From: Syncephalis fuscata S228
Lineage: Eukaryota; Fungi; Zoopagomycota
Assembly (NCBI GenBank): GCA_025786725.1
Contig: JAHLTZ010000013.1
Location: 496,001-560,000, forward strand
Direction: 5' to 3'
DNA: 64,000 nucleotides
Shown: positions 23,826 to 53,708 of the stretch, in pieces
Position numbering within the stretch: the first letter of the stretch is position 1
Layout of the letters: each line of letters begins with the position of its first letter
Notes under the pieces: generated by a model
Seen by the model: the letters and a program-made list of their open reading frames with translations, nothing else
Databases searched by the model: none
What the model was told of the DNA's origin: nothing
Made by a program: the position numbers and the translations under genes

Positions 23826-25375
23826 ATGGCTACCAGTATTTTATCTGACCGGCAAAAAGAAGAGCTGTTAGTATTGACGTCATAACAGGATAACACGCTA
23901 ATCATTGGCATATATTTATATACGACGTTTAGACAGCGGGCCATTCTTGATTTTTTAAACACAAATGGTTATCGAGAAGCATATGAAGCATTGAAGCTTG
24001 AAAGCAGCAATGAAGATTTTGACCCTGATCCCAAGAGCAAATATAGTGGATTATTGGAGAAAAAATGGACATCAGTAATTCGACTACAGAAGAAGGTAAG
24101 AGCAAGGACGACTAAAGATGGATGTTAAGCGTTAAATGGCTGTAAAGATTATGGATTTAGAAGGTAAACTGGCACAATCACAAGCAGAATTGGCGATAGC
24201 ACCGGTGCGTAAAGCAACGAGCTCAGTTGATTGGATTCCGCGTGGACCAGAGAAGCATTTATTGTCGGGACATCGATCACCAGTGACGCGCGTTTGTTTC
24301 CATCCCGTATTTTCAGTATTGGCAACGGCAAGTGAGGATACGACGATTAAAGTATGGGACTACGAGACGGGAGAGTTTGAACGCACGCTAAAGGGACACA
24401 CCAAAGCAGTTCAAGATATTGGATTTGATTCAAGAGGCAATTTTCTTGGTAAGCTATTCTTTTAGATAAATATACTAGTATTTGTTACTAATTTTTGCTA
24501 TTTAGTCTCGTGCTCGGCTGATTTGACAATCAAGATATGGGATTTACAAAATGATTACAAGTGTATTAAAACGTTATACGGTCATGACCATAGTGTTTCA
24601 GCAGTCATGTTTATGCCAGGTGGTGATAAGATTGTTTCGGCATCGCGTGACAAAACGATTAAGATCTGGGAGGTGGCGTCAGGGTAAATAGCTATTGCGA
24701 CGATGCATTGTTCTGTTATCAGGCATCTAAGTATTTGTTTATTATAGATATTGTGTCCGAACATTGCAAGGCCATTTGGAATGGGTACGCGCCATTAGTA
24801 TGACTGAAGATAGCCGTATGTTGGCCAGTGGATCTAATGATCAGGTGGGTGATTTGATAGATGGATATATGGAATGATTAATGACATGGAATAACTAGAC
24901 GGTGCGTATTTGGGAGCTTTCCACAGGAGAATGCAAGGCAGATTTACGTGGACACGACCACGTTGTTGAATGCGTAGCATTTGCCCCAGTGACCGCTTAC
25001 CCATTTATTCGAGAATTGGTTGGTATTGAAACGGCCAAGAAAGGCAGTAAGGATGAACAGCCCGGCCAGTATTTGGTTTCTGGATCGCGTGATAAAGTGC
25101 TTAAACTATGGGACGCTCAATCGGGCCAGTGCCTCCACACGTTCGTCGGTCATGACAATTGGGTGCGCGGTGTCGTTTTCCACCCATCTGGCAAGTATTT
25201 GCTCAGTGCGAGCGATGATAAGATGTTAAAGATCTGGGATCTTAAGACGGGACGGGCACAAAAGACCATTGAGGCACACCAACACTTTACGACGTGTGTG
25301 GCCTTCAACACGAACAGTCCAACGGTAGCGACGGGGAGTGTAGACCAGAGTGTTAAAATATGGGAATGCCGATAA
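23826..25375 (+). CDS. PAC1: LIS1/NudF/Pac1 dynein regulator (LisH, coiled coil, WD40); multi-exon
   Basis: [98 protein letters not shown]. Confidence 0.97.
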
Positions 25376-25775
25376 TAAATAAAGAGTCTTTTTGTTATCT
25401 TTGAAAAAATAGCTAGATTACTAAAGTAGATTAAATTTTAAATGGCTTATGCTTTTGTTATTATCGAGTGTATAATTGTTACTGTTATTAACACTTATAT
25501 TTGGTAAAGAGTAGTGATGACTACCAGTAGTGGATATTGATAAACATAGTGACTACTAGTCGTTGGTAATGGCACGATTAGATTAATACAGTTGACTGAC
25601 TTATGATGGCATTAGTTTACACAGCAATAAATTAAAATGAATATAAAAGAATTGGCTGTACTACTAAAGCATTTATAAAAGTTTAGCTATTTATAACTGT
25701 TGAGTTTCACTAAACAAGTTAATTATCATCTACCATACTATTTTACGGTATTAATTATAATGTATATATAACTCA

Positions 25776-28452
25776 CCGATGTGCTATGTGGATTGATTTA
25801 ACGGTGTGATAAATGGGTTGGCAGTGAAATTAGAGCATATTTTGGTAATAGTCAAGACATGTACGAGTATATTTAGTATATGGATACAATAGCAATGCTA
25901 TGGCATAAATATTTGATTAATATATTACAGACTATGGTGCATTACGGAAAGACTATTGTGCATGTATATAGCAACTATTTTGGTATAGATTAATATTGAG
26001 TTAATACGGCTATTTAAGGTTTCCAACGATGCTATGACAAAACTAGTAGTTTTGGTACTATTCTAATGCCAATGAACATTATTACAGAAAAGTATATATG
26101 AATATGTATTGGCTATTGGTCTATAATATTTGTTTGCCGACTTATAATTATAACTATGAACGTGTCTGTTAAAGATGTAAATAAGATTTTGTGGTTTTTT
26201 GCAACCATTATTGATATGTCATTTATTGGAGTTATTTTGTACATGTATCTATGAGCAATAAACCTATTTAATTCTGATGTAAACTAAACCTTTATGTATG
26301 TAGTTTGTTTTTTGAAATTACCATAATCATTTGGCTATTGATTTATTTTAGTAAAGCTATTGAGGCATGTGTTCTGTGTGACTGGCAGCATTGCAACAAT
26401 GCTGGTTAGCTAGTAGGCGTAATAGTGTAAACTACCATACAATCAGTCCTAAATATACCCTAGTTATACGTCAACCATGCATAGTGTATATTGGTATTGC
26501 TGATATACTGTTGGCTTATAATAACAACAAGCAATTGTCAAACTGGTTAAACACATGGCATCAATATAACTGGCTAAGTTATAATAGATGTTGCTATTGC
26601 TATACAATTACCGATGGCTAATAATAAATGCAATAATATTACTATCATTAACTAACGCGGTATACATCTACTGGTTGCAGCTAGTGTATGCCATAATACT
26701 TTGGCTGTTTATTTCAATGCGTTAGCATGTTTATTCAGCATTATGACTAATAAACACATTGTATACGGATGTAGTTAGTGTCAATAATGGGCACAATATG
26801 TAAACAGCTGTGTTCTTGATATGTATAATTGTATGGTGTATATAAATATAAATCAACAATTAAACAATTGTCAATGATTAGCAGTGAACACAAAAACATT
26901 AAACTACTGTTGTCATCAACATATAAGCAGACGTATTAGTTGGCAATAACACCATTTTAATATTACTCATGACTGTTATCAAGTCTATAATACTTAATTG
27001 ACAATGCTATACTACTAATAACGATAAAAATAGCAGAAACTCATAGCAAAACTATTATTGACATATGACCAAATAACCATTAGTTATAGCGCTAGTATAT
27101 ATAGCTAGTTAAGTATTAGTATTCCGCACTGATTACTGATGGTTTGATTAGGCAGTATTTACAAATGCTGTTGACTAGTTGTATTAACCGATTGGTTGTA
27201 ATCAATATGCTGCTATGTCAGTGTTTTATTAAGTAAATATGCTAGTAATAGCGGATTAGCACCAACATATCATAATATCTTATAACTCGATAGCCATCAT
27301 TATATTAGCCAGATGTCTATTAATCAAATAAATACAGTATTGATAACAGTTAGTTATACGTTAATGAACATGTAACATCACTATCAGCTAATTATTTGAT
27401 TGTATTTACGCTATCTATTTATTGTGCATCACTAGTCACTAATATACAGTTGATGTTAAATATGCTGCGTAAATCATTGGCATGATATAGCCACTGATAT
27501 TAATAGTCAGCAAGTGCTATCTATACAACTTAATGCCACTATAAAGTAATGATATGTATTGCAGTGTAACAACTAAGAGTTAGAAAAATGCCATTTGTAT
27601 TGACAACGGCAATGGTATAATTTGTTTATAAAATATTTTAACCAAAGCTATTGTTTATACATTATTAGTTACCAACATAAGCATGAATATTACTATTGAT
27701 TGTTGAAAATAGTATGCCAGTTATTACTAAATAGTTAGCAACCGAAATGATGCAGCTATTAGTGGTATTGGCCAATCTGCAACATACCTACAGATAACAT
27801 GAGCACTTGGTGTATACTTACCGCTAGCTATCAATCAGCCTACTGCCGTCATAAATTAGCATAAATGTCTACTTGTTTAGTAAGTGGCAGCATGACATGC
27901 ATTGCTACAACCGATGACTGTTCACGAGATTTGATGTTGTACAACAGCAATGATATGACGTGCGCCCCAATGGTAGTAATATACTAATAGCTGTTATTGG
28001 TATACATTTGGATAGTGGCTATTTAGTGACCAGAAGTAATGTCGCATAATATGGCCTACCAATAATGCTGCTTATGCTTACTTCACATTACCATTGATAC
28101 TAATAAAATAGGCAATATACATGGCTAGCACATTGTTCATAACACGCATAGTCAACGGTTTATCAGTGTAGGCTATTGCGCTATTATATAGACACTGTAA
28201 ATATATACAATACCTACCACTAATATATCTATTAGCAATTAATACACTTTTTTATTAGTATTTGTGTAGGCTTATACTGTAAAATAGCAGAGGGAATTAT
28301 TGTCGCTTTTTTGATTAACCAATTGATTTTCACCGATTTTTAATTCCATCAGTAATTAGCTAGAAATACATAATACCATTCATTATGACCGCATAGACTT
28401 GGCGCATTGACACATATAAGTTATGTATTTTTGAAAATTGTAGAAAATGCTA
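25776..28452 (+). repeat. Left arm of a ~5.4-kb palindrome (long inverted repeat)
   Basis: Reverse complement of 28509-31183 at every point checked, e.g. 25801 ACGGTGTGATAAATGGGT vs 31141 ACCCATTTATCACACCGT, and 28381 CATTATGACCGCATAGACTTGGCGCA vs ~28553 TGCGCCAAGTCTATGCGGTCATAATG. Confidence 0.95.
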
Positions 28453-28508
28453 CATATAGAAACAGCAATATTATTATTAAAATGGCACTTTAAGCATTTT
28501 TTAGTTGT

Positions 28509-31183
28509 TAGCATTTTCATAATTTTCAAAATACATGACTTATATGTGTCGATGCGCCAAGTCTATGCGGTCATAATGAATGGTATTATGTATTTCTAGC
28601 TAATTACTGATGGAATTAAAAATCGGTGAAAATCACTTGATTAATCAAAAAAGCGACAATAATTCCTTTGCTATTTTACAGTACAAGCCTACACAAATAC
28701 TAATAAAAAAGTGTATTAATTGCTAATAGATATATTAGTGGTAGGTATTGTATATATTTACAGTGTCTTATAATAGCGCAATAGCCTACACTGATAAACC
28801 GTTGACTATGCGTGTTATGAACAATGTGCTAGCCATGTATATTGCCTATTTTATTAGCATCAATGGTAATGTGAAGTAAGCATAAGCAGCATTATTGGTA
28901 GGCCATATTATGCGACATTACTTCTGGTCACTAAATAGCCACTATCCAAATGTATACAATAACAGCTATTAGTATATTACTCACCATTGGGGCGCACGTC
29001 ATATCATTGCTGTTGTACAACATCAAATCTCGTGAACAGTCATCGGTTGGTAGCAATGCATGTCATGATGCCACTTACTAAACAAGTAGACATTTATGCT
29101 AATTTATGACGGCAGTAGGCTGATTGATAGCTAGCGGTAAGTATACACCAAGTGCTCATGTTATCTGTAGGTATGTTGCAGATTGGCCAATACCACTAAT
29201 AGCTGCATCATTTCGGTTGCTAACTATTTAGTAATAACTGGCATACTATTTTCAACAATCAATAGTAATATTCATGCTTATGTTGGTAACTAATAATGTA
29301 TAAACAATAGCTTTGGTTAAAATATTTTATTAAACAAATTATACCATTGCCGTTGTCAATACAAATGGCATTTTTCTAACTCTTAGTTGTTACACTGTAA
29401 TACACATCATTACCTTATAGTGGCATTAAGTTGTATAGATAGCACTTGCTGACTATTAATATCAGTGGCTATATCATGCCAATGATTTACGCAGCATATT
29501 TAACACTAACTGTATATTAGTGACTAGTGATGCACAATAAATAGATAGCGTAAATACAATCAAATAATTAGCTGATAGTGATGTTACATGTTCATTAACG
29601 TATAACTAACTGTTATCAATACTGTATTTCATTTGATTAATAGACATCTGGCTAATATAATGATGGCTATCGAGTTATAAGATATTGATGATATGTTGGT
29701 GCTAATCCGCTATTACTAGCATATTTACTTAATAAAACACTGGCATAGCAGCATATTGATTATGACCAATCGGTTAATACAACTAGTCAACAGCATTTGT
29801 AAATACTGCCTAATCAAACCATCAGTAATCAGTGCGGAATACTAATACTTAACTAGCTATATATACTAGCGCTATAACTAATGGTTATTTGGTCATATGT
29901 CAATAATAGTTTTGCTATGAGTTTCTGCTATTTTTATCGTTATTAGTAGTATAGCATTGTCAATTAAGTATTATAGACTTGATAACAGTCATGAGTAATA
30001 TTAAAATGGTGTTATTGCCAACTAATACGTCTGCTTATATGTTGATGACAACAGTAGTTTAATGTTTTGTGTTCACTGCTAATCATTGACAATTGTTTAA
30101 TTGTTGATTTATATTTATATACACCATACAATTATACATATCAAGAACACAGCTGTTTACATATTGTGCCCATTATTGACACTAACTACATCCGTATACA
30201 ATGTGTTTATTAGTCATAATGCCGAATAAACATGCTAACGCATTGAAATAAACAGCCAAAGTATTATGGCATACACTAGCTGCAACCAGTAGATGTATAC
30301 TGCGTTAGTTAATGATAGTAATATTATTGCATTTATTATTAGCCATCGGTAATTGTATAGCAATAGCAACATCTATTATAACTTAGCCAGTTATATTGAT
30401 GCCATGTGTTTAACCAGTTTGACAATTGCTCGTTGTTATTATAAGCCAACGTATATCAGCAATACCAATATACACTATGCATGATTGACGTATAACTAGG
30501 GTATATTTAGGACTGATTGTATGGTAGTTTACACTATTACGCCTACTAGCTAACCAGCATTGTTGCAATGCTGCTAGTCACACAGAACACATGCCTCAAT
30601 AGCTTTACTAAAATAAATCAATAGCCAAATGATTATGGTAATTTCAAAAAACAAACTACATACATAAAGGTTTGTTTATATCAGAATTAAATAGGTTTAT
30701 TGCTTCATAGATACATGTACAAAATAACTCCAATAAATGACATATCAATAATGGTTGCAAAAAACCACAAAATCTTATTTACATCTTTAACAGACACGTT
30801 CATAGTTATAATTTATAAGTCGGCAAACAAATATTATAGACCAATAGCTAATACATATTATATATACTTTTCTGTAATAATGTTCATTGGCATTAGAATA
30901 GTACCAAAACTACTAGTTTTGTCATAGCATCGTTGGAAACCTTAAATAGCCGTATTAACTCAATATTAATCTATACCAAAATAGTTGCTATATACATGCA
31001 CAATAGTCTTTCCGTAATACTCCATAGCCTGTAATATATTAATCAAATATTTATGCCATAGCATTGCTATTGTATCCATATACTAAATATACTCGTACAT
31101 GTCTTGGCTATTACCAAAATATGCTCTAATTTCACTGGCAACCCATTTATCACACCGTTTAATCAATCCACATAACATATCGG
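28509..31183 (-). repeat. Right arm of the ~5.4-kb palindrome
   Basis: See left arm; roughly 95-99% identity by eye; spacer 28453-28508. Confidence 0.95.
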
Positions 31184-32605
31184 CTTTGGTATTAAGGATC
31201 TGTGTCAATTTTATTATTATCTTTAAATATGTTTAATTCAACGGAGCATATTACTTTACTCTGTTTACTTATGAATCAACAGCAGTTCATCGATACTATC
31301 AATTCCCAGTTGTAGGTTGTCAATAAGCAGTGCAAATCTATCAGTTATATTGTCGATAATACATAATTGATTACGTTAAACAAAAGAGTAACATAGTCAA
31401 CTATTTAATAAATACAACGTAATACGGTGTGTACATGTGATGTTAATCAATAATGAAATAAAATGACAAATTCATTCAGCACTACTGCAAATACTGCTGA
31501 TGATGCTAAATAAGTGTCACTCCGTGGATTGGTGTTAAATGAATGGAAATTAAATAAAATAGTAGCTGCAAGGTAGTTAGCATTTTTCGTGTGTATCCTT
31601 GACTGTAATAGTACCAGCCATCAATGAATATATACAAAATATCTAGTATTCAATGTGCTTTAATTCTGATTAGCGGTTTATTCTATATCATTACATTACT
31701 AAATGTACGTATTTCTGTATCAGTAAATATAATGGCATCTACTTGTAATAAATCTATACACAATAGATTGACTGCCTTGTATGTATCCACTAATATTATG
31801 ACTTCATTTTTCTCGAAGGCAATACAATTTTTGATGTTGCCGCCATTATAGATTGTTTTGAATCTAATAATATTGAATGATTAAGAGTAACAATAATAAA
31901 AATATACTTATAATAACATTTAATAAGCAAAATCACTTAATTTAAAGTGGTATATTGTCTAGTTATAAAGTAGTGTAATTAACATAAATCGAAGGCATCG
32001 GTGAGCTTGTTTCTAAACTGTCTATCGCACATAACGCATATACTTGTTATACATTATTTATGATTATCAAACTGTAACAAATATAGCAATAGTCCAACAT
32101 ATACATTTATACATATATATATTGTTAGCCATTGATATTGCAGGTATGTCTGCTGTTATGTTATGTTTACGTATAGTTGTTTAGTTGTTGTTACTGTGTG
32201 TCCTTTGTATATTGTATACCGCTGTGTAGGTAGTCCAACAATGATATAGAGCTGCATAGAAGTATCGAATCGTTTTTCGTAAATTGTCTAATCTACTACA
32301 TTGTTCATGAAATGTATAGCTACTAGTATGTGTATACACATTATTCTACATACAGCTATGCTCTAAATAATACATATCCACCGCAGTTGTTATTGGCTGC
32401 TTGAGTAGTTATAATTGAACAGTTTTTTAGCGTATAGTCGCTTTGCTGCACTTTGCTCTACGTGGAATGCAATTACTGTTTACTTCACAATACGGGCTGG
32501 TAAAAAGAACCGTTTTATTCCATGTACACCACAAAGAGAATAATACAGACTCAACTAGCTAAATGGTGCAGTATATCAGCGTTGCTAAATATTTTGCATT
32601 TTGTG

Positions 32606-32950
32606 TTATTGTGATTCGTGGCCGTAGTAGCCTTCTCGTTCTGCTCGTCGTGCTTGCGCTTGTCGTAATCGTTCACGGTACTGTTCACGTTCTTTCTCTT
32701 TCTCTTCGCGGTATATTTGGTTGTCACGAATAAAGTAGCCGACAAGTCCTACGACAGAAAGTACGCCAAATGTCATGACCCATCGATTAGGCTTAATAAA
32801 CAACTAAGCGCGCACCATTGATTCAGTAAAGTAAGCTCTATAATTCCGCCGTGTTCTTACTTCAGGATTCATAAATCTAAATAGCCGAGTGGCTGCAATC
32901 TTGCCTTCATCGGGCCGTTTAGACGGCAAGGGATCTGTAGATGGCGTCAT
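32606..32950 (-). CDS. SMIM8/DUF4500-like small single-pass membrane protein; one intron (32804-32860)
   Basis: Spliced product ...[36 protein letters not shown]... matches the SMIM8 signature [21 protein letters not shown]; canonical GTAAGA...TAG intron. Confidence 0.8.
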
Positions 32951-34038
32951 GAATGCTAGAAGAAATAGGAAAGAAGCGTATTTTTTAACCAATTTTTTGT
33001 ATTAATATAATAGTGTATATTATTATTTAATTTACTAATCAACTAATATGAGCCAGTTATATGATCTGAGGGTCAAATGGTTATATTCAACAATATCTGC
33101 TCTATTGAACATGGAGCTGAGTAGTGAGTTATATGGATCATCAAAATACTCATTATCATAGATTTATTATCTAGTACGTCTATATACTCCATCAACATGT
33201 ATCAGTATATCATACTGACCACTTTATATTAATAAAATCCACCTATTTATTGCTAACATGTTCTTTATTCAGGTGGATCTATCTCGTTTATTTAGCTGCT
33301 ATATGTACTATGATTTCATTACAATACATCATTTTCTACCCACTCATTATATTCGATACTATCCTATGTTCTATTTATAGAATCTGCCCTTTTCTCCCGT
33401 TAAATGCTTGTATATTTCTACTCAGTTCATCCAAACATATACATACGCATACTGTATCTCTATCATTAATATTTGTATACTTTCTTTGGCTGTTCATTTA
33501 AATCAATATTATTGTATACTCTAACAAAGTAAAAAGATATACGCTTTTAGAGCTCAACCCAAGTCATATTGCCAATATAACTAGTAAATTGTCTTTAAAG
33601 AGTAAAAATACACAATTTATATTAAGCCATATCGCTAGTAGTGGCATATCCTAGTGCAACACAGTTTAACAGATATATAGCTAATGCAACTAATACTTGT
33701 GCCATGTTAAAGCCATGCATAATATAATATTTAGCTACAACTATTGATAGATATCAAAACTACATTATTCTATTTATTTATTTGATTACTATGTCTAGTA
33801 GCCATGTAATAAACGTAATCATATCCATTCCCACTCATAGAATAACACAACTATAAATAGTGGCCATTATCATCATTATTATTATATGCAAACTGCAATA
33901 CCAAGGCGGCTTTGCAATCACAAGGCCAGTGCATACCATGTGGACTGCCTAAACCGTTACGTACTTTCAACACTCAACCCAGCTTTTCGCTTCTTCAACA
34001 ACAACACTGCACATACCACTTACTACTTACAAGCTAAA

Positions 34039-43398: not shown

Positions 43399-43512
43399 TA
43401 TTTTTAGATTAAATGGCACTGGAGAGAATAAAGTGGTATGACGGGGTAATGTTTACTAAAATGTGTGTATTGCTAAGCTATTTTATAGCTGTGATACATG
43501 TTAGTAAATGTA
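43399..43512 (+). repeat. Degenerate inverted repeat upstream of the chitinase (pairs with 45801-45917)
   Basis: Shared blocks ACTGGAGAGAATA, CGGGGTAATGTTTA, TAAGCTATTTTATAGCTGT and TTAGTAAATGTA in reverse complement; about 80% by eye. Confidence 0.8.
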
Positions 43513-44281
43513 TTAACAATGTTAAATGCATGATTTTTATATTAAAAACAGTTTAGGGATTGTCAGGAACCCATCGGCTACATACCAATATTGTTTATAA
43601 AAGTGCAATGAGGATGGTGCAATTAATATTGCTATAACTCTAACAGTATTGCTGTTTCTTAAAGTGCCGTATTTTGACAGTGTATAAATACTTAATATTT
43701 AAACTTTTGTAATATAATAAATTTCAACGTTTTACTAAAGATCAATTAATAACCATAGCAACATAAACAAATTTGTTATTTAATTGGGTATAATTGCCTA
43801 ATAGCATGTTGTATATTTTTAATTTATAAAGTAAAAATAAGCCGTCTAAATCGACTATAATTACTTTACAATAGTACATCTGTCATTACAACCTTTGACT
43901 GGCAACTATTTCATCGTAATAACCAACTGCAAATCTTAATAAGGAATAATAGACACGTGTGTATTTAAATTGTTCGCATTACCAAATTGAGAATTTATAA
44001 TGACGTTCAATCTATTTTTATAACAATCCATAGTGATAGCAGCCCCTTTGTAGTGTGACGTGCAACATATCGGATCATGTGGTATACAGGCACTCGTAGC
44101 TGGCCTGCTACTCCAGCTATAAAAACTGGCCATTTCTCCATTTCATTAATAAAGAATTAACTTAGTTTAACATTCGTTTTATTATATTCTGCTCTGTGTT
44201 ATATCCATCTTGTCTATTGCTAGGGCCCCTTCTATATAGCAGTACGACAGCAGCTTTCCTTCTTCCTTTCAATACTACATT

Positions 44282-45552
44282 ATGAGTAACCAAGTACTGG
44301 CTGCCTACTTTGTGTCGTGGGGGATTTACGCTCGCGATTACCATGTCGCCAGTATACCCGGCGATCAACTAAATCATATACTTTACGCGTTTGCCGATGT
44401 CAATGACCAAGGTGGCGTGACACTGACCGATAAATGGGCAGACATCGAAAAGCACTACGAAGACGATAGCTGGAATGACACAGGCAGCAATCTCTATGGT
44501 AATTTCAAACGACTTGCTTTACTTAAACGACAGCAGCGTACACTAAAAGTGTCGCTGTCCATTGGCGGCTGGACGCTATCTAAAAACTTTCCTGTTGTTG
44601 CCGCTGATCCAGCTAAGCGAGCCGCTTTTACGCAAACTGCTATAAAGCTGCTCGATGATCTTGGCTTGGATGGTATTGATATTGACTGGGTTGGTATTGA
44701 CTAGGCTTGAACAATTAAACTACAATATTTACATGTTGCTATTAGGAATATCCACAAACGCCGGATGATGCACGCAATTACGTACTTTTATTGCAAGATA
44801 TACGTGCTGCATTGACACAGTACCAATACAATAAAGGAGAAGCGCAGCCATATTTGTTAACGTGCGCTGTTCCTTGTGGCGAAGCAAACTATCAAAAGTT
44901 GCTGCTAAACGAAATGGGTCCATTGGTCGACTGGCTCTACTTAATGGCTTATGATTTTGCTGGGTAATGTGGCGATCTACACTAATGTCACATAACTAAC
45001 ATTAAGCTTTTTTGTAGTTCTTGGTCATCGGTTGCCGATCATCAGGCTAATCTTTTTGACGGTGAGCTATCGGTATCAAAGGCCGTCGATTACTACTTGT
45101 CGCAAGGTATACCGCCAAATAAAATTGTTGTTGGTTGTCCACTGTACGGCCGTTGTTTCCAGCAGACCAACGGTATCGGCCACAGCTATCAAGGGATAGG
45201 AGAAGGCAGTTGGGAAAAAGGTGTTTACGACTACAAACAGCTACCACTTCCCAATGCACAGATTCATATTGATGAGCATCGAGGCGCGAGCTACTCGTTT
45301 GATCCGGCCAAGCGAGAACTAATTACCTACGACACCACGGAGATTATTCAACGCAAGGCAACTTGGTGCCGTGAACGTGGCCTACGCGGCATAATGTTCT
45401 GGGAATTAAGCTCTGATCAACGCGATTCAGAGCACTCTCTCGTGAGCACAGCCTGTCGTGCTCTCGGTGGACCTGCTGCACTTGAACAAGCCGAAAATCA
45501 TCTTTTCTTCCCTACTAGCCAATATGAAAATGTACGCAATGGATTTTCATAA
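44282..45552 (+). CDS. GH18 chitinase (group A type, no signal peptide); two introns (44690-44745 and ~44964-45018)
   Basis: YFVSWGIYAR, HILYAFA, LYGNFKRL, KVSLSIGGWT, catalytic LDGIDIDW|EYP, LMAYDFAGSW, GIMFWELS. Confidence 0.96.
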
Positions 45553-45800
45553 GCATTGCGGTTGAATCTTACTTTGTGTCCCTACTTTTCTTTCATATTA
45601 ACTTTCTTCCCCCGCATTTTGTTAGCTTTGTGCCATTATTTAAATGTGATCAATTAATTCTGAATAGAATATTACTATACTATTGCTTGTTCTTAAATTT
45701 AAGCCATTTATTGTGCATGTAATTATTTCAACGTCGCTCCCTATCATGAATCAGTTTTTAGTCCATTCACCACTATTACGTAATATCTCCACTAATGCAG

Positions 45801-45917
45801 TACATTTACTAATGGATATTACAGCTATAAAATAGCTTAATATTACATACATTCTAATAAACATTACCCCGCTTATACCCATTCTATTCTCTCCAGTAAC
45901 ATTTAATTTAAAAAATA
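45801..45917 (-). repeat. Degenerate inverted repeat downstream of the chitinase (pairs with 43399-43512)
   Basis: Reverse-complement match as above. Confidence 0.8.
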
Positions 45918-46565
45918 TGGATTACATTACATTTATTCACATATTACAAGGCCCTGCTCATCAAGCAATTATCTTGTATTGATTTTTTATTTGGACAAAC
46001 ACGCTTCATCTAAGCACGCAATAACATAATCACGCTATGCCTTACCGCGTGGCCAGTCATTATCTATTAGCTATATAACAACCATCTAATAGCACATTTA
46101 ATAAACAATAATCCATTTAGGTCATATTCATTCATCTTTAGTACATCTTAATTTAGTATTTATAAATGATTTGTCAGTGTATATATTTGTAACAAATGGT
46201 TATTTGTTACGTAGAATAACCATAAAAAATAATAATTGTGCAATTATTTTCGCACACTATCTGATTTAATTTTCGAGAAGTCTATATATGTTGCTTAACC
46301 TTTAATAAAAGACGATCTTTATTCAACTATATGTTGCTTTATTGCTGTTATAATATTTTAAATGCTTGTAAACATTGTTATTTATTTATTAAGTTAAATA
46401 AAATGAGTTAATCGTATAGTACGTTGTGTTTCGTTTAACATGATTATTTAATTAGTTTTAATAATAATTATTAACTATTTATTATGATTTGTAGTTAAAA
46501 TGACTAAGTTCAATAATATTTGTTGTATTGAACATGATGATGGATGATGGGTGACATGAAAGCTT

Positions 46566-46925
46566 AAAATGCTCATTATCATAAATTCATTATCCAATAG
46601 TTATATATATATAATATCATTAGTATTACACGCTTGTATTAATATAATTTATTCTATAATATACTAGGTCGCATTCTATTCATTATAGTCCTCAATGCAT
46701 TTTTTATGCATATGTGCAATATGACACAGCACTGTTGATTGTATATCAAGTATACTGTATATTGTTCTAGCACATAATAACACATACTATTTAAAAATTA
46801 TTGTCAATTTGATTCGAAATTTATTAGTAATATATTGTAAGTCATATGATTATCTAATATTAATGATATAAATAAGTAAAGGATATATGAGTATTGGATA
46901 AGCAATCTATAGTAATGAGTGTTTT
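46566..46925. repeat. Short degenerate inverted-repeat pair (MITE-like); arms ~46566-46628 and ~46855-46925; belongs to a motif family also at 33143 and 52392
   Basis: AAAATGCTCATTATCATAAATTCATTATCCAATA vs reverse complement AAAACACTCATTACTATAGATTGCTTATCCAATA; ATATCATTAGTATTA vs ATATCATTAATATTA. Confidence 0.55.
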
Positions 46926-47572
46926 GACGACTGATGCTACTTACCATTCAGTTCTATTAAAGATAGAACAAATGCTAGTTTAATTGTGTAAACATTATGT
47001 TTAGCCATTTGGTTTTCAAACAGCATTAAATGTTAATAAATTGCATAATAACATGAATAAATAAATTACTGATATTGTTTTAAATCAGTTCATGTAAAAA
47101 CATAATATCCAGATTTATTAAATAGATCGGAAACAGCATCAACGTATCTCATAAATAAAACACTGACTTAATGATTTAATTAAATAAGTTTATAATTGAA
47201 AGCTAAATATGAAGAGAAATAATAACATGTTTTTGTTTTTGTTTTTGCATCGTTATATAGAGACTATTAAAGTGTTAATATTTGTGCTTAATAGTAATTA
47301 TTACTGATTATGATAAGCAATTTATTATAAAGAACAGATACGCTAATACAAATATAAAAGTATAGGTTAGCTCATTGTAAACAAGCAGTTGCCGTTCCCA
47401 GTCCCCGTCGAGTTCCACCCTGGAACGACGGAGCCCGGTGTACGGCATTGCCTGCTTGCTTGGTCCCGCCCTTGACACTGTTGCCTAGCATAAAGTTAGC
47501 ATTGCTATAATTAGTTTTATATTAACTTACCATATTATACAAGTTTAATTTTAATTGCGTCATTAAACGCAA

Positions 47573-48077
47573 TTAAGCCATTTTGCCGCCGTGCACATTA
47601 GTGCGACGACGCGGTCTTGGAGTTGCAATTCGGCGAGGCTTTTCGCCCCGCTGAATTGCGCGAGAAGCGCTGTTGGCACTTCTTGCTTCTGTAGGCGTGC
47701 TGTCGGTCGTGACAGCAGCCTCAGCCGCTTGGACCGGTGCCAATTTGAGGGCACCGGTAAACTCCACACCCTCCATAGGGGTGGCGTGACCGAAGGAAGA
47801 GGAGGAGCAGTAGTAGTGACTACTGAAGAGAAGCCCGAAAGGCTTGTAATGTTCGTGTTGATTGCTTTGTTGCTGCTCAAAACCTCTTCGGTTTGAACAG
47901 CAACGCTGCGTGTAGCAGCCTTCGCCTGCATCCCTATGCAGCGGGTAGTTGGTGCCAATAGAGCCTGTGTTGGCCGCGACACAGACTCTAGCACTTTGAC
48001 CTTTTTCAAGGTCAGTTTGTTGGCCACCTCAATGTCTGTTTCAGAAACAGACGTTTCTGGACGGTAGGTGGTGGCAT
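47573..48077 (-). CDS. Hypothetical low-complexity protein in a GC-rich island; probably frameshifted in the C run near 47780
   Basis: Two overlapping minus ORFs (47563-48027 and 47573-47776) join by adding one C (SVTPP-P-MEGVEF). No recognisable domain; start uncertain. Confidence 0.35.
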
Positions 48078-50143
48078 TGTAGCATAAATGATGCTACGCG
48101 TATAAATGAATAGTGTAGTCATCGTTGACTACTTTACACTATAGCAGCGCACAAAAACATACAATTAGCATTGTGTAAATACTATATAGCGCAAGTGCAA
48201 ACGCAACATAACAAACGAACCGCTCAGTTCAAGTAGATGGATAGTTTCAAGCAAACGCCAAGGATGAACTGCGCGGTTGATCAAAACGAACACAGACGCA
48301 ACGCAAAGTGCTACGCGACAAAACAAACTGGCGCAGCAATCATAATTTCATTCACTAACAAACGCAAACGCAGCACTTGCTTACCTTTTTAAAGCGTTTG
48401 TTATGACAAAAAACCACAGTATTGTAGTATAAAGAAAAGATGGAGTGAAAACAAACAAGAGGAAAGCGTTATAGAACACTACAGATTGATCTTGCGCAGG
48501 CTTTTACACAGTAATCGCCACTCATAGCCACTCAACTATTTTTCACACACACACTAATACTTTGTATTATCTTTTATTTCTATTAAAGCGTTGTATATAT
48601 AACTTGTAGCATCTTCCTGTACTCATGCAGCCCAATACGATCTCATCAACCAAAACAGGCCTGCATCGGACATGAATATTAAATGGTCCGTGTACACCTT
48701 GCTAAACCGGTAAGTAGTCCGATAAACTGGATGGCGTGATCACAACACAAATAGACAACACGTGATCTTGTGTTTACTTTTCATAAATACGCCACCACCA
48801 TGATTGTCGCGTATTAATAACGCGTGTACACGACTGAAACAATAACAGACCATTTATACAATACACGTAGCTGTAATAACATATAAGTTTTATTCAAGCC
48901 ACTTGTATATATTCTAATATTCATAATATACGGTTTATTTCTATTTATACGATTGTTTTGTTAATAGGTGCTTTGTTGGTAGGTGTGTTGTAATCACATA
49001 GTCTTGTTACTAATGTAGATACATATCAATTAGCTTATTGTAGCCAACTCACTACTACAACAGTTTGTAATAGCTTTATTGTTTCATAGCATCAGTAGGT
49101 ATTATTTTCTGTTATATGTAAGAACTATAGTGTAAATATGTATATAATATACTCAATAGGTATAGCTGTAGTTTATTGGATGTATATAAAATACTTGTAT
49201 CTGTAGCTATATCCGTTAGTATTAGAAGTATCAGTTGTAGCTGCTTTACGTGCTATGATATATATGACGAACTGATTGTCTATCAATATTATACCAAAAC
49301 AGTGAATATGTTGTAATTCTTCAAATGAATAAGCATATCCAAGATTGATTAATAATGTATTGTATACATCATATACTTATTTTACTGTCGACGCTGTAGC
49401 AATATGTAAAAATGGCAATTGTTTGGTCATTGCCGTGTTGTAGACACTGGCGATGACATCACGCTATGTTCGGCAATACCTATACTACTATTATTGATAC
49501 ACTTATAGTTTGCCGTTATGCTTGAGCAACTATAAAACACTTTATTATTATTTTAATGTTATTCATCGCTCATTACCATGTTCAATAAATTGAATGTTAT
49601 TAAATAAAATCATTTAATTCCCAATTTATAATAAACGGTTAATAAACATAGTATATATAATAATTCAGATGATACACAACAGAACCAGGCACATCGCTAC
49701 TCTTCTAATATCCAGAATAATCAACTGAAGCAATAGCTTTATTTAAAAAACTGCAATTAAATTAAAGCAAAAATAATATATGCTCCATTGATGCACCAAA
49801 CAACTTGATTATATTAGTATTCAAGAAAAGAAAAAAATGAGCTATTGACCATTTAGCCAAGAATTAGACTTGTATGGCTTATTAATTAATCATTTATTTA
49901 TATGTTTGTATCGAAAGCAAGTTTAGTAATAATCTTTGTCATCATTTATCGAATGGTGATACAATTATACGTGTGGCCAGCCAGCACTTTGAACTGCAAC
50001 AATATGATTAATAAGATACACTAATAATGCCATGCAGGTTTCTAATAAACACTATGCTATATTATAAAATAAAACAAATCATTGAAATGTAAAAACTAAA
50101 ATAGTCCGGCTTAACCTTGTTTTTATAGCGCTGTTGGCCATTG

Positions 50144-50827
50144 CTATCGAAAACCAAGCATTTGTCCCAGACCGCAGCAGAGAAGGAATACGCAACATGT
50201 AGCCTCCGCGCCCTCTGTGCCACGGGTACCGCAACAACAGCAACAACAGCTGCTTTTTGCGTCGCGCTTTTCTTGTGCCTCTTCATCGGCAAGTGCACGT
50301 GCAAGTGAATCATTGCCATACGGACTATATCCGTTGGGCCGCCATCCATCGGCAGCTGCACCGCTATTTTTAACTCTTCCATGCGCGCCATCATCTGCCT
50401 CATCACTCGTCGCGAGTCCAATCGCGTTAAGTGCGTCGCGTCGTTGTGAACCTCCCGAGCCACCGCCTAGCGATGCACCAATATGACTTTCTTCGTTAGA
50501 CGATGTTGCCAGCATAGCTGAGTGTGCTGTCGGTTGCTGTACAACAACCATGGGCGGTGGTTGTAAATTGACAGAATTGCGATTTGTTTGATAGGATGTA
50601 CTACCCGTCGTATTGCTGGATGAATTCAATGATATACGGTTAATACTATGCCCAGATGGACTACGTCCATGAGTCTGTGCCTTGGGAGGCACCGGCAAAG
50701 ATCCTGGATGTGCGGCTGAGTATGGATCTATACTGCTGGGAGGCGGTGGTAACGGCGCGGCATACTCCTCCAAATGCCGCGGTGAATGATGTTCATGCAG
50801 CGGTTCATTCCGGCTTTGATAGGACAT
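50144..50827 (-). CDS. Pro/Ser-rich protein with Cys-rich C-terminal tail (CYSTM-like)
   Basis: 227-aa ORF with disordered N-terminus, ending SSCCCCCCG...TCCVFLLCCGLGQMLGFR. Confidence 0.7.
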   Translation of the reverse strand: MSYQSRNEPLHEHHSPRHLEEYAAPLPPPPSSIDPYSAAHPGSLPVPPKAQTHGRSPSGHSINRISLNSSSNTTGSTSYQTNRNSVNLQPPPMVVVQQPTAHSAMLATSSNEESHIGASLGGGSGGSQRRDALNAIGLATSDEADDGAHGRVKNSGAAADGWRPNGYSPYGNDSLARALADEEAQEKRDAKSSCCCCCCGTRGTEGAEATCCVFLLCCGLGQMLGFR

Positions 50828-51346
50828 GTTGTAAAATAATGAATCAAAATAAAGAACTGGGTATTGCGACAGGCATGCAAAACGCTGATAAATATATTTG
50901 CTGATTATTCGAGGCTGATCTACAATTCAGATAAAAATAGAAGTTAAAACGGTTACAATGTGAGTAACACTAGCGTGTAGTATTCCTTTGTGTATGAATG
51001 CCTCAGTGGTATGAAGTAAAAATAGATAGCAAGTTAGGCCTTCTTCGTCAGTATCAGCACTACGATTGAAATATGGAAGGTGTTGGTGAATGATACGGAA
51101 TCGCAAAAAAAACGCTGGTAAAATACAGGAAAGGGAGTGGGAGCCAAGATGATTAAAGCAAGCATAACTGCATATCTCCTCGTTCTTCACGGTCTATAAC
51201 AGGATTTCCCAGACACAATACACGTGAGGCAGTGCTATTTTAAAAACTGCGTCTTGTTATTATCTAAATAAAACGCTTTAACAGCATAAAACATATATGT
51301 ACCCCGTATTATTATAAATATATTTATAGTAATATATACCAGGTGA

Positions 51347-51869
51347 TCAATTGGCTATACAATGGAAACAAGCAATGCCAATAAAACAGCACTCGAAAAT
51401 AGATTCAATGCCATTTACAAAATAAAGCATACATGAATTTGTTTCAATTGCTTCGTCTAAAACCTTTGTACCTTTCGTCTAGGACTTGTATCGGCAATTC
51501 CTAGATTCATAGAAGAAGTAAACTTCAAAGGCGACGATGAAGGCAGCGTGGTACCTTAGTGGTATGTAGTAGCGGTGCTATTAATATATGTGCAACTATT
51601 CCTGTAAAAGTGGTGATATGAGTTGGCGACACTTGAATAACCGTAAGTTTATCTGCAATGAATATTGTTGTATCATTAATACGATTTAATTCAACTGGTT
51701 GATTGTATATTTGGAGGCTTGGATTTATTTGCACAGACAAAGCGTGCCCTGTCGGTAATATATTATTATGCTACTAAAGCTCAAACACTGGTCCTATGCA
51801 TGGATTTACAAATCCTGATACAGCAACCGTCTCCGTATCAGTATCAAGTGGCGGCCTTTGTCTATGCAT
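51347..51869 (-). pseudogene. Pseudogenised tandem duplicate of the 53170-53708 Cys-tail gene
   Basis: SVQINPSLQIYNQPVE...DTTIFIADK aligns with PAQINPPLLVSNQSTE...DTVISIADE; tail IESIFECCFIGIACFHCIAN* aligns with VQAIFGCCLICVTCFQCMGN*; in-frame TAG TAG at 51771-51776 opposite Gln codons, plus frameshifts. Confidence 0.85.
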
Positions 51870-53169
51870 ACCAACAAATTGGCTATGCTAGATGTAAATT
51901 TTAAAATGGCAAGTTGGTTTTATTTAATAATGTGTATAATAAATTCAATATTTATATGAGTGGTATATATATGTCAGTAGACTGTTATTGTATTTTGATA
52001 AAGTGTATTATTATACATTGCTTAAAACGGTTGCTATATAGTTGGCAGTAGCACAGTAGAGCTAAGGCAAGTGTATGCAAAGGTGATGTATCAACATTGA
52101 TGATGAATAGTAAATGTAGATATTGGAATTATTATTATATTTAATTTAAAAACCGTTTATTAATAATTTAATGTAATTTGGGATTAAACGAATAAATGTA
52201 ATAACATTCACGTAATTGAGCTAGACATTGGTTCTATTGAAGATGAGATGGGTAATGGGCTATGTTAATGCTTAAAACATTTAAGCATAATATAATTTGA
52301 TGATTAAATGGCTATATTTAATAATATTTACAATATTGAACTAATCGTTTATTTTATTAAACATAGAACGGGTGGTGGGTAAATTAGATTTAAAATACTC
52401 ATCATCATAGATTTATTATCTAATATGCATATATTCACCATTTACTTATATTATTTCCATTGTACATTTATCCTGCATATATATATATATATGCAATAAT
52501 CATAGTAAAGACAAGCCAGAAATGCACTTACCGTGACAATAAACTGCCAATACCAATGATTGGAGTAATGAAGGTCAGATTACAAAAGAGCAATGCAAGT
52601 ACATAGTGTAGAGGGTGTTTGTACCTAACTAGTAGTCAAATAACTACCAACAATATCTAACTGGTATATATAGAGTGTACAAGTATATGCAATGGATATA
52701 TGCTATCAAGTGTGAAGAAAGAGAAGGAAAGTGTAGCGACATAGATTGTATGTTGTGTTGTTAATATAAATAAACTAAAACAATGATGTCATTTAATAAC
52801 AAACTACTCATTATCATAGAACACATTTTAGTATAATAGCGAATGTATTAAAAAATAAAGCCATTTGACACCAAATAATAAGCTATTATTATAGAACATA
52901 TCACTATTTAAATAGCAAGGGCAGTTAAAATGAATAACTAACAAATAATAAAAGTAATCCACTACAAATTAAATCATTTCATTCTATATACTAATAAAAG
53001 AACAGCAACAGTATATTAAAGTGTATTAGTGGTAGGCATAAAACAATGCATCATGATATACTGAATGATAGATAGAAAAGAATAACAGTGTAGACATGAC
53101 ATATAAAATTGCCTACTATTTATTTGATAAATACTATAAATATGGCTATTATGTTAGTGTATTAAGCAG

Positions 53170-53708
53170 TTAATTGCCCATACATTGAAAACAAGTAACG
53201 CAAATAAGACAGCATCCAAAAATGGCTTGAACACCATCTGCTAGATAAATAAGACACGACTTTGACTCAATTGATTCATCACGAGTCCTTTGGCCCTTTT
53301 GTTTAGAACTTGCACTGGCACTCTCTAAATCCATAGGTGGATGGTTAGACAGCAAAGGCGACGATGAAGGCTGCACTGGTGGTGACACTTTCACAGCATA
53401 TGGTGGTGGTGCTAATACTGTAGATGTAGCTGTCTCTGCAGAAGTAGTGGTATAAGCTGGTGGTGGCTGAGTGGCCGTAGATTCATCTGCAATGGATATC
53501 ACTGTATCAGTAATACAGCTTGATTCAGTTGATTGATTAGACACTAGCAATGGGGGATTGATTTGTGCCGGCAAATTCTGTCTTGTCTGTAATATGCTAT
53601 CATACTGTTGCTGTTCAGGTAAATTTGTAGACTTTGATATAACGAGTACTTCCTCCATATCAGGCCGTGGTTTTTGCTCATGTTATTGGCAATAGTAGCT
53701 TCACTCAT
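53170..53708 (-). CDS. Pro/Ser/Thr-rich protein with PPPY motif and Cys-rich C-terminal tail (CYSTM-like); upstream ATG needs one extra A in the run at ~53671
   Basis: ORF 53170-53658 with PPPAY and APPPYA motifs, ending GCCLICVTCFQCMGN. The paralog reads in frame through the upstream segment. Confidence 0.7.

Follow-up and report, generated by a model that had tools for sequence, protein, structure and literature searches.

What made the 5.4-kb palindrome that separates two convergent genes of Syncephalis fuscata, a fungus that parasitizes other fungi, and does it have a function there? We analysed a 64-kb window (contig C35, positions 496001–560000) of the 29.4-Mb assembly, in which self-BLAST returned a single inverted match, at window positions 25776–31183 and with 97.6% identity (coordinates are those of the window unless a contig is named). 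The first-pass annotation had described two arms around a short spacer, AT-rich and without a credible open reading frame (ORF). This structure is present in the assembly, with arms at about 25776–28450 and 28510–31183 and a GC content of 0.31, and no ORF in the window's list that overlaps it exceeds 76 amino acids. We conclude that the palindrome is probably a gene-less, non-autonomous (defective) foldback derivative made by hairpin-primed DNA repair, and not an RNA gene.

Matching an arm against the assembly revealed what the first-pass annotation had missed, namely that it is a dispersed repeat. The arm has 119 matches genome-wide, including near-full or large copies at 96–99% identity (98% on C168 and C328, 96% on C319 and 99% on C180), and family DNA also continues past the right arm, at least to 31988 (97% to C168:531-4282) and probably to 32110. 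This additional segment (31184–32110, minus strand) is absent from the left arm; it is 98% identical to C168 until 31988 and 69% identical to older copies at 31902–32110. Outside the centre, the left arm (25776–28244, plus strand) is an inverted copy of the inner sequence of the family with its outer end truncated, 98% identical to C168 and C328, and the right arm occupies 28714–31183 on the minus strand.

At the exact middle lies a hairpin of about 470 bp, here called H (28245–28713), which resembles a miniature inverted-repeat transposable element (MITE). It consists of two halves of about 205 bp with TA-CAC ends around an asymmetric spacer of about 60 nt (28451–28509). We found about 25 full or near-full copies of H in the genome. 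Most copies have arms of about 0.2 kb centred on H; the arms reach 0.45 kb in one copy on C319 and 2.7 kb in the window. In the usual unit, seen on C168, C319b and C320, H stands between an inner arm and an outer part, whereas the window copy carries a second, inverted inner arm in place of the outer part. The option of a foldback element, raised by the first-pass annotation, thus gains support from the dispersed family, from the hairpin centre at about 25 loci and from giant inverted relatives described below.

Halves of H are 4–6% apart within the lineage formed by the window and C168, 6% in C319a and 14% in C86 and C304, against 10–27% between these lineages; the old halves on C34, C334 and C279 are 23% apart and not homogenised. 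Halves thus fall into groups by lineage, and the spacer, homologous in all lineages, lies flipped relative to the inner arm in some; one half of H therefore appears to have overwritten the other on more than one occasion. In the window, 7 substitutions and 5 gap positions separate the halves (204 nt), and the 2,463 nt of arm outside the hairpin contain 24 substitutions and 14 gap positions. Twenty of these 24 substitutions are transitions, in line with the earlier description of divergence by substitutions, many of them transitions, plus indels. Changes private to one sequence are likewise mostly transitions (53 of 58) and run in both directions, 31 C>T and 22 T>C. They lack a CpA or CpG context bias, and we rejected decay of the arms by repeat-induced point mutation or by 5-methylcytosine (CpG) deamination. 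A ribosomal DNA array was rejected as well; Rfam matched nothing in the left arm, the spacer or the giant palindromes.

How the window copy may have arisen is suggested by its junctions. The 10-bp word CTCACCGATG spans the left junction (25772–25781, plus strand) and recurs in inverted orientation at 31996–32005 (minus strand). These are its only two matches in the window; the genome holds 16, a third being on C180. An inverted 10-mer at both junctions resembles the signature of a template switch at microhomology, and the junction word explains the G that is private to the left arm at arm position 6. We propose that a break or stalled fork arose beside H, and that its 3' end would have folded back on, or invaded through, the symmetric half of H and copied about 2.46 kb of inner arm. 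It would then have jumped via 5 bp of microhomology to the word at 31996–32005 and been joined to the LIS1 side, and later exchange with other copies would have mixed the alleles of the arms. Breaks beside inverted repeats of 42–229 bp do give rise to large palindromes in yeast and in Chinese hamster ovary cells (PMC7999016). A 52-bp spacer abolishes frequent fork stalling in eukaryotes and longer spacers stabilise palindromes (PMC7999016); here the 60-nt spacer, together with 1–2% divergence, would damp cruciform formation enough for the palindrome to persist.

The locus also coincides with a rearrangement. In S. plumigaleata, SMIM8, the gene to the right of the palindrome, adjoins Pet127 and no palindrome is present; because Pet127 of S. 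fuscata lies on C311, the site is a synteny break relative to that species. Persistence had been taken to suggest function. The arms are as divergent from each other as from copies on other contigs (26–36 substitutions), which makes that argument weak, and the synteny check, with no palindrome next to SMIM8 in S. plumigaleata, gives it no help. As separate observations at this site, the orientation of SMC5 relative to PhyH is inverted between the two species, and in the place of the acetyltransferase gene that separates PhyH from SMIM8 in S. plumigaleata, window positions 33000–33900 hold repeat DNA.

To place the gene-less window copy within its family, we turned to the giant relatives. C99, C26 and C313 carry 14-kb palindromes in which a 2.4-kb core lies between 6.1-kb arms that are 99% identical; a 22-bp array follows, and then another palindrome, whose arms are 3.4 kb long. 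The window arm is 67–80% identical to the middle of the 6.1-kb arm. These older relatives have 22- and 16-bp tandem arrays at their ends, of which the window copy has none. On C26, a self-overlap at 23 kb outlines a quadripartite unit of two giant palindromes, possibly a free circle or a tandem array. The core gene, whose spliced models we searched exon by exon, encodes C2H2 zinc fingers (ZnF), an unannotated domain and a helical tail; we found no ORF or relic of it in the window arms. A structural model of the core domain (predicted local distance difference test, pLDDT, 72) aligned with human alkyladenine DNA glycosylase (AAG; 1ewn) at Z 8.1, which the tool states to be borderline, with a root-mean-square deviation of 3.6 over 148 aligned residues, and with 7xfh at Z 7.5. 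The next rows, at Z 4.4 or below, were C-terminal domains of formyltransferases, which belong to the same superfamily as AAG. We therefore predict, at this borderline level, that the core domain has an AAG fold.

The conserved residues of the family point in the same direction. Among 99 family sequences, a Glu is present in all 99, a Tyr at +2 in 97 and a His at +11 in 93. AAG has Glu125, Tyr127 and His136 in its catalytic site (PMC12347255, PMC13299579), and the family motif would match these by spacing, not by superposition of residues. As Pfam and PDB sequence searches matched the core domain to neither AAG nor any other family, and its identity to AAG is about 12%, homology to AAG rests on fold and motif. 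Features in the ESM Atlas for the core protein were all under 0.9, and its structure search gave one bacterial cluster at a template modelling (TM) score of 0.50; Foldseek against the PDB and viral sets returned nothing at E<0.001, with AAG chains having the highest probabilities. The ZnF-AAG family comprises 1,101 representatives at 50% identity (E≤0.001), and its named members come only from the Mucorales, Umbelopsis and Mortierellales (Mucoromycota) and from Syncephalis. In an unrooted 21-row tree, two S. fuscata proteins sit at two places among Mucorales sequences, a placement compatible with host–parasite transfer. We found no paper on the family in the open-licence library that was searched. 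The gene is the only coding candidate found for a partner acting in trans on copies such as that in the window, as a predicted enzyme that may be driver or cargo. An intact paralog of 529 amino acids (34% identical) lies about 26 kb before the window (C35:469254-470435), near inverted fragments at C35:465452-465786.

In other species, the gene recurs in a similar setting. We examined 11 loci chosen by protein rank and not by context, with one unrelated locus as control, and long inverted repeats enclose the ZnF-AAG gene at five of them: Mucor mucedo (repeats of about 1.1 kb), Benjaminiella (897 bp, 99.9%), Zychaea (1,394 bp, 98.6%), Circinella (1.5 kb, with an empty palindrome with 1,317-bp arms alongside) and Radiomyces (500 bp). 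The arm takes in the 5' end of the gene at four or more of these five, and tandem sub-repeats occur in or near the arms at most of them. A Hesseltinella locus has inverted tandem arrays on either side of the gene, and the remaining five loci have no enclosing arms. The arms in these species showed no similarity to those of S. fuscata. Elements of M. mucedo, Benjaminiella and Zychaea end in TA-CAG or TA-CAC; those of the first two end in TA-CAG and are flanked by TA, which points to mobilisation by Tc1/mariner there. We also noted that in three clusters (P0005, P0027 and P0045) many short-read contigs with a ZnF-AAG gene are only 2–2.7 kb long, a size that would follow if assembly stops at inverted arms on either side.

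Several observations weigh against hairpin-primed repair at the window locus. The arms differ from each other by 38 substitutions, and from C168 by 36 and 35 and from C328 by 31 and 26; at about eight sites the left-arm allele is that of C168, C24 or C319 and not that of the right arm. With arms as distant from each other as from copies in trans, we have to allow for later conversion or for joining in trans, and the alleles would fit a joining of two copies, or an assembly join, as well as a cis fold-back followed by conversion. The right-hand 10-mer lies in older family DNA (31902–32110), which weakens a locus-specific origin for it, and the palindrome ends lack a direct target duplication of 8–11 bp. 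One additional breakpoint is not rare in the SMC5-PhyH-SMIM8 block, which is otherwise rearranged. Finally, we saw no read or read contig that covers the entire 5.4 kb.

An assembly artefact, in which two separate copies were mis-joined via the symmetric hairpin, is nevertheless unlikely, and we would put it at around one chance in ten in plain terms of belief. Arms resembling two different copies, the synteny break and the presence of several arm copies at contig ends are what such a join would produce. Against it, the LIS1/left-arm junction is repeated at 99.7% on C180, which carries the LIS1 flank and left junction and is thus the same locus assembled twice; the 10-mer of the left junction was found, among the young copies compared, only beside the right arm of this locus; and the left half of H retains alleles like those of the outer-side half of C168. 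An adapter chimera was rejected, as the centre contains no adapter-like sequence, and the predominance of transitions among the arm differences also speaks against an artefact. One DNA contig from the raw data runs across the spacer into the second arm and may derive from another copy; DNA contigs otherwise cover the arm but not the unique flank, the pattern that a multi-copy sequence should give, and a second read sample yielded pieces of H at 90–95% identity. We consider it slightly less probable still that the locus works through hairpin RNA, small interfering RNA or heterochromatin seeding, possibly directed at the host. The neighbours are placed as described earlier: the 3' exons of the transcribed and spliced LIS1/PAC1 gene (24136–25375, plus strand) stop at 25375 on the left, and the SMIM8/DUF4500 gene (32606–32950, minus strand) points inward with its stop at 32606, 1.4 kb from the right arm. 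As 92% of arm bases fall in perfect runs of at least 21 nt, any arm transcript would be a Dicer substrate, and low RNA traces of the family do exist. However, in the RNA evidence at hand (assembled contigs of one spliced run, on the left side, where the end of a contig need not be that of the transcript), the LIS1 contig, with a depth of about 900, ends at 25386, 390 nt before the palindrome. The arms show only patches of 2–4x, 200–400 times below LIS1, whose letters match other copies, and no long transcript across both arms was seen, so that the proposed read-through into a long hairpin finds no sign from the LIS1 side. The arms are moreover not homogenised, the site is not conserved in S. 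plumigaleata, and the arms lack similarity to 12 loci of other fungi, a small sample that does not consist of host genomes. Least probable of all is a centromere or replication origin. Inverted-repeat centromeres exist in some yeasts and the cumulative GC skew peaks at the palindrome, but the skew flip there follows from the convergent genes, both flanks are gene-dense, and single contigs (C24, C319, C320 and C224) hold several copies of H.

The most serious alternative, to which we give about half the credence of hairpin-primed repair, is a cut-and-paste foldback or MITE family moved by a DDE transposase of the Tc1/mariner or Mutator-like element (MULE) type, with the palindrome formed by ectopic recombination through H and the AAG-like gene as cargo. 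The TA-CAC ends of H (in the window and on C168, C86, C304 and C319), the two Mucorales elements with TA-CAG ends and flanking TA, 15 matches to MULE transposase domains in the S. fuscata genome and the different copies' alleles in the arms all favour it. It is opposed by the missing 8–11-bp duplication, by H flanks that are AT-rich and partly alike between copies, so that the ends are not crisp (and are blurred in older copies), and by the failure to detect a Tc1/pogo transposase: DDE_3 (PF13358), DDE_1 (PF03184) and HTH_Tnp_Tc3_2 (PF01498) had no match in the genome, in a search whose blanks do not prove absence, the DDE_1 blank being weak because its control matched nowhere. A more speculative reading, somewhat less probable again, extends hairpin-primed repair rather than excluding it. 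Here the ZnF-AAG protein of a selfish element would bind sub-repeats in the arms and excise bases; abasic sites would lead to breaks, hairpin-primed repair would spread the arms, and the window palindrome would be a by-product in trans. The predicted fold (Z 8.1, against 4.4 for the best non-AAG row), the nearly invariant catalytic-spacing motif, the inverted repeats at five of 11 loci with their tandem sub-repeats and the blank Tc1/pogo searches argue for it, and restriction glycosylases of the PabI family provide a precedent in which base excision leads to breaks in mobile systems (PMC10273834). Against it stand an enzymatic activity that is a prediction from a model of borderline score, an AAG relationship drawn from residue spacing and not from a sequence match, Mucorales ends (M. 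mucedo, Benjaminiella and Zychaea) that resemble Tc1/mariner cargo elements, the MULE transposases in the genome and the lack of enclosing arms at six of 11 loci. That the predicted enzyme drives the element is accordingly a hypothesis, and a doubtful one; equally tentative is the broader suggestion that the palindrome is a footprint of undescribed fungal selfish elements which use a ZnF-targeted AAG-like enzyme instead of a transposase, and which may have passed between Mucorales hosts and Syncephalis.

Other repeats and genes were noted around the locus and its relatives. A second MITE-like family, a motif of about 130 bp with 571 genomic candidates, has window copies at 33019–33200 (plus strand), 46440–46930 and 52150–52470; it often forms inverted pairs 0.6–0.9 kb apart and also contributes a module to the 6-kb arms. 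A short inverted pair that encloses a gene (49582–52219) is related to modules of these arms, and a diverged direct duplication (within 51349–53606) pairs 51349–51772 with 53172–53606. A GH18 chitinase-like gene (43401–45914) is flanked by inverted repeats of about 110 bp at 83%. Next to family repeats, small basic ORFs that match no protein family were seen repeatedly, at three loci (L022, L025 and L029), and a window ORF at 47563–48027 resembles them by eye only. Beside other copies of H we observed a tyrosine-recombinase (DIRS-like) fragment (L028:1-606, on C34), a copia-like element (L030:3-3977, on C279) and a tandem pair of LPMO_10-like secreted genes (L018:4722-7569, next to H on C86; also on C304).

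The window locus itself is probably neutral. It belongs to a repeat family that keeps producing long palindromes, which are normally purged, and this copy is located at a synteny break. Its interest lies in where it leads, to a large unannotated protein family with a predicted DNA-glycosylase site, whose genes in early-diverging fungi lie time and again between inverted arms. Should the enzyme drive the element, this would be a new mode of eukaryotic DNA movement as well as a glycosylase directed by sequence; as cargo, it would still be an accessory enzyme conserved in foldback elements, for which Fanzor offers a comparison.

Among known systems, the family is closest in outline to foldback transposons such as Drosophila FB, Galileo and Tetris (PMC4079207), with very long inverted arms around a short middle, internal tandem repeats (in the 14-kb relatives and the Mucorales elements), many rearranged non-autonomous forms, dispersed copies and an association with rearrangements. 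However, the family's middle encodes a protein of ZnF/AAG fold and not a DDE transposase, and the window copy is centred on an internal hairpin and possesses neither termini nor a tandem domain or target duplication. Lacking termini and target duplication, it works as a foldback relic and not as a classical member. H, at 470–490 bp, AT-rich, with long inverted halves, TA-CA(C/G) ends and about 25 copies, resembles Stowaway-like MITEs of Tc1/mariner, but its halves have been repeatedly overwritten and extended to kilobases, its flanks are often homologous, and a Tc1/pogo transposase was not found in the genome. Inverted-repeat amplification with template switching is a known comparable process. 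The window copy shares with Butler-type fold-back palindromes (PMC7999016) a short inverted repeat that marks the exact centre, arms of variable length, a microhomology junction and a rearrangement breakpoint; those are known as accidents or developmental programmes, whereas here such formation recurs as a heritable repeat family. The core protein is like AAG (also called MPG) in predicted fold and catalytic spacing, and unlike it in its fusion to C2H2 fingers and a helical tail, its low identity without a Pfam match and its fungal repeat context. PabI-type restriction glycosylases have a different fold, HALFPIPE; what the family would have in common with them is base excision in the service of a mobile, DNA-breaking system.

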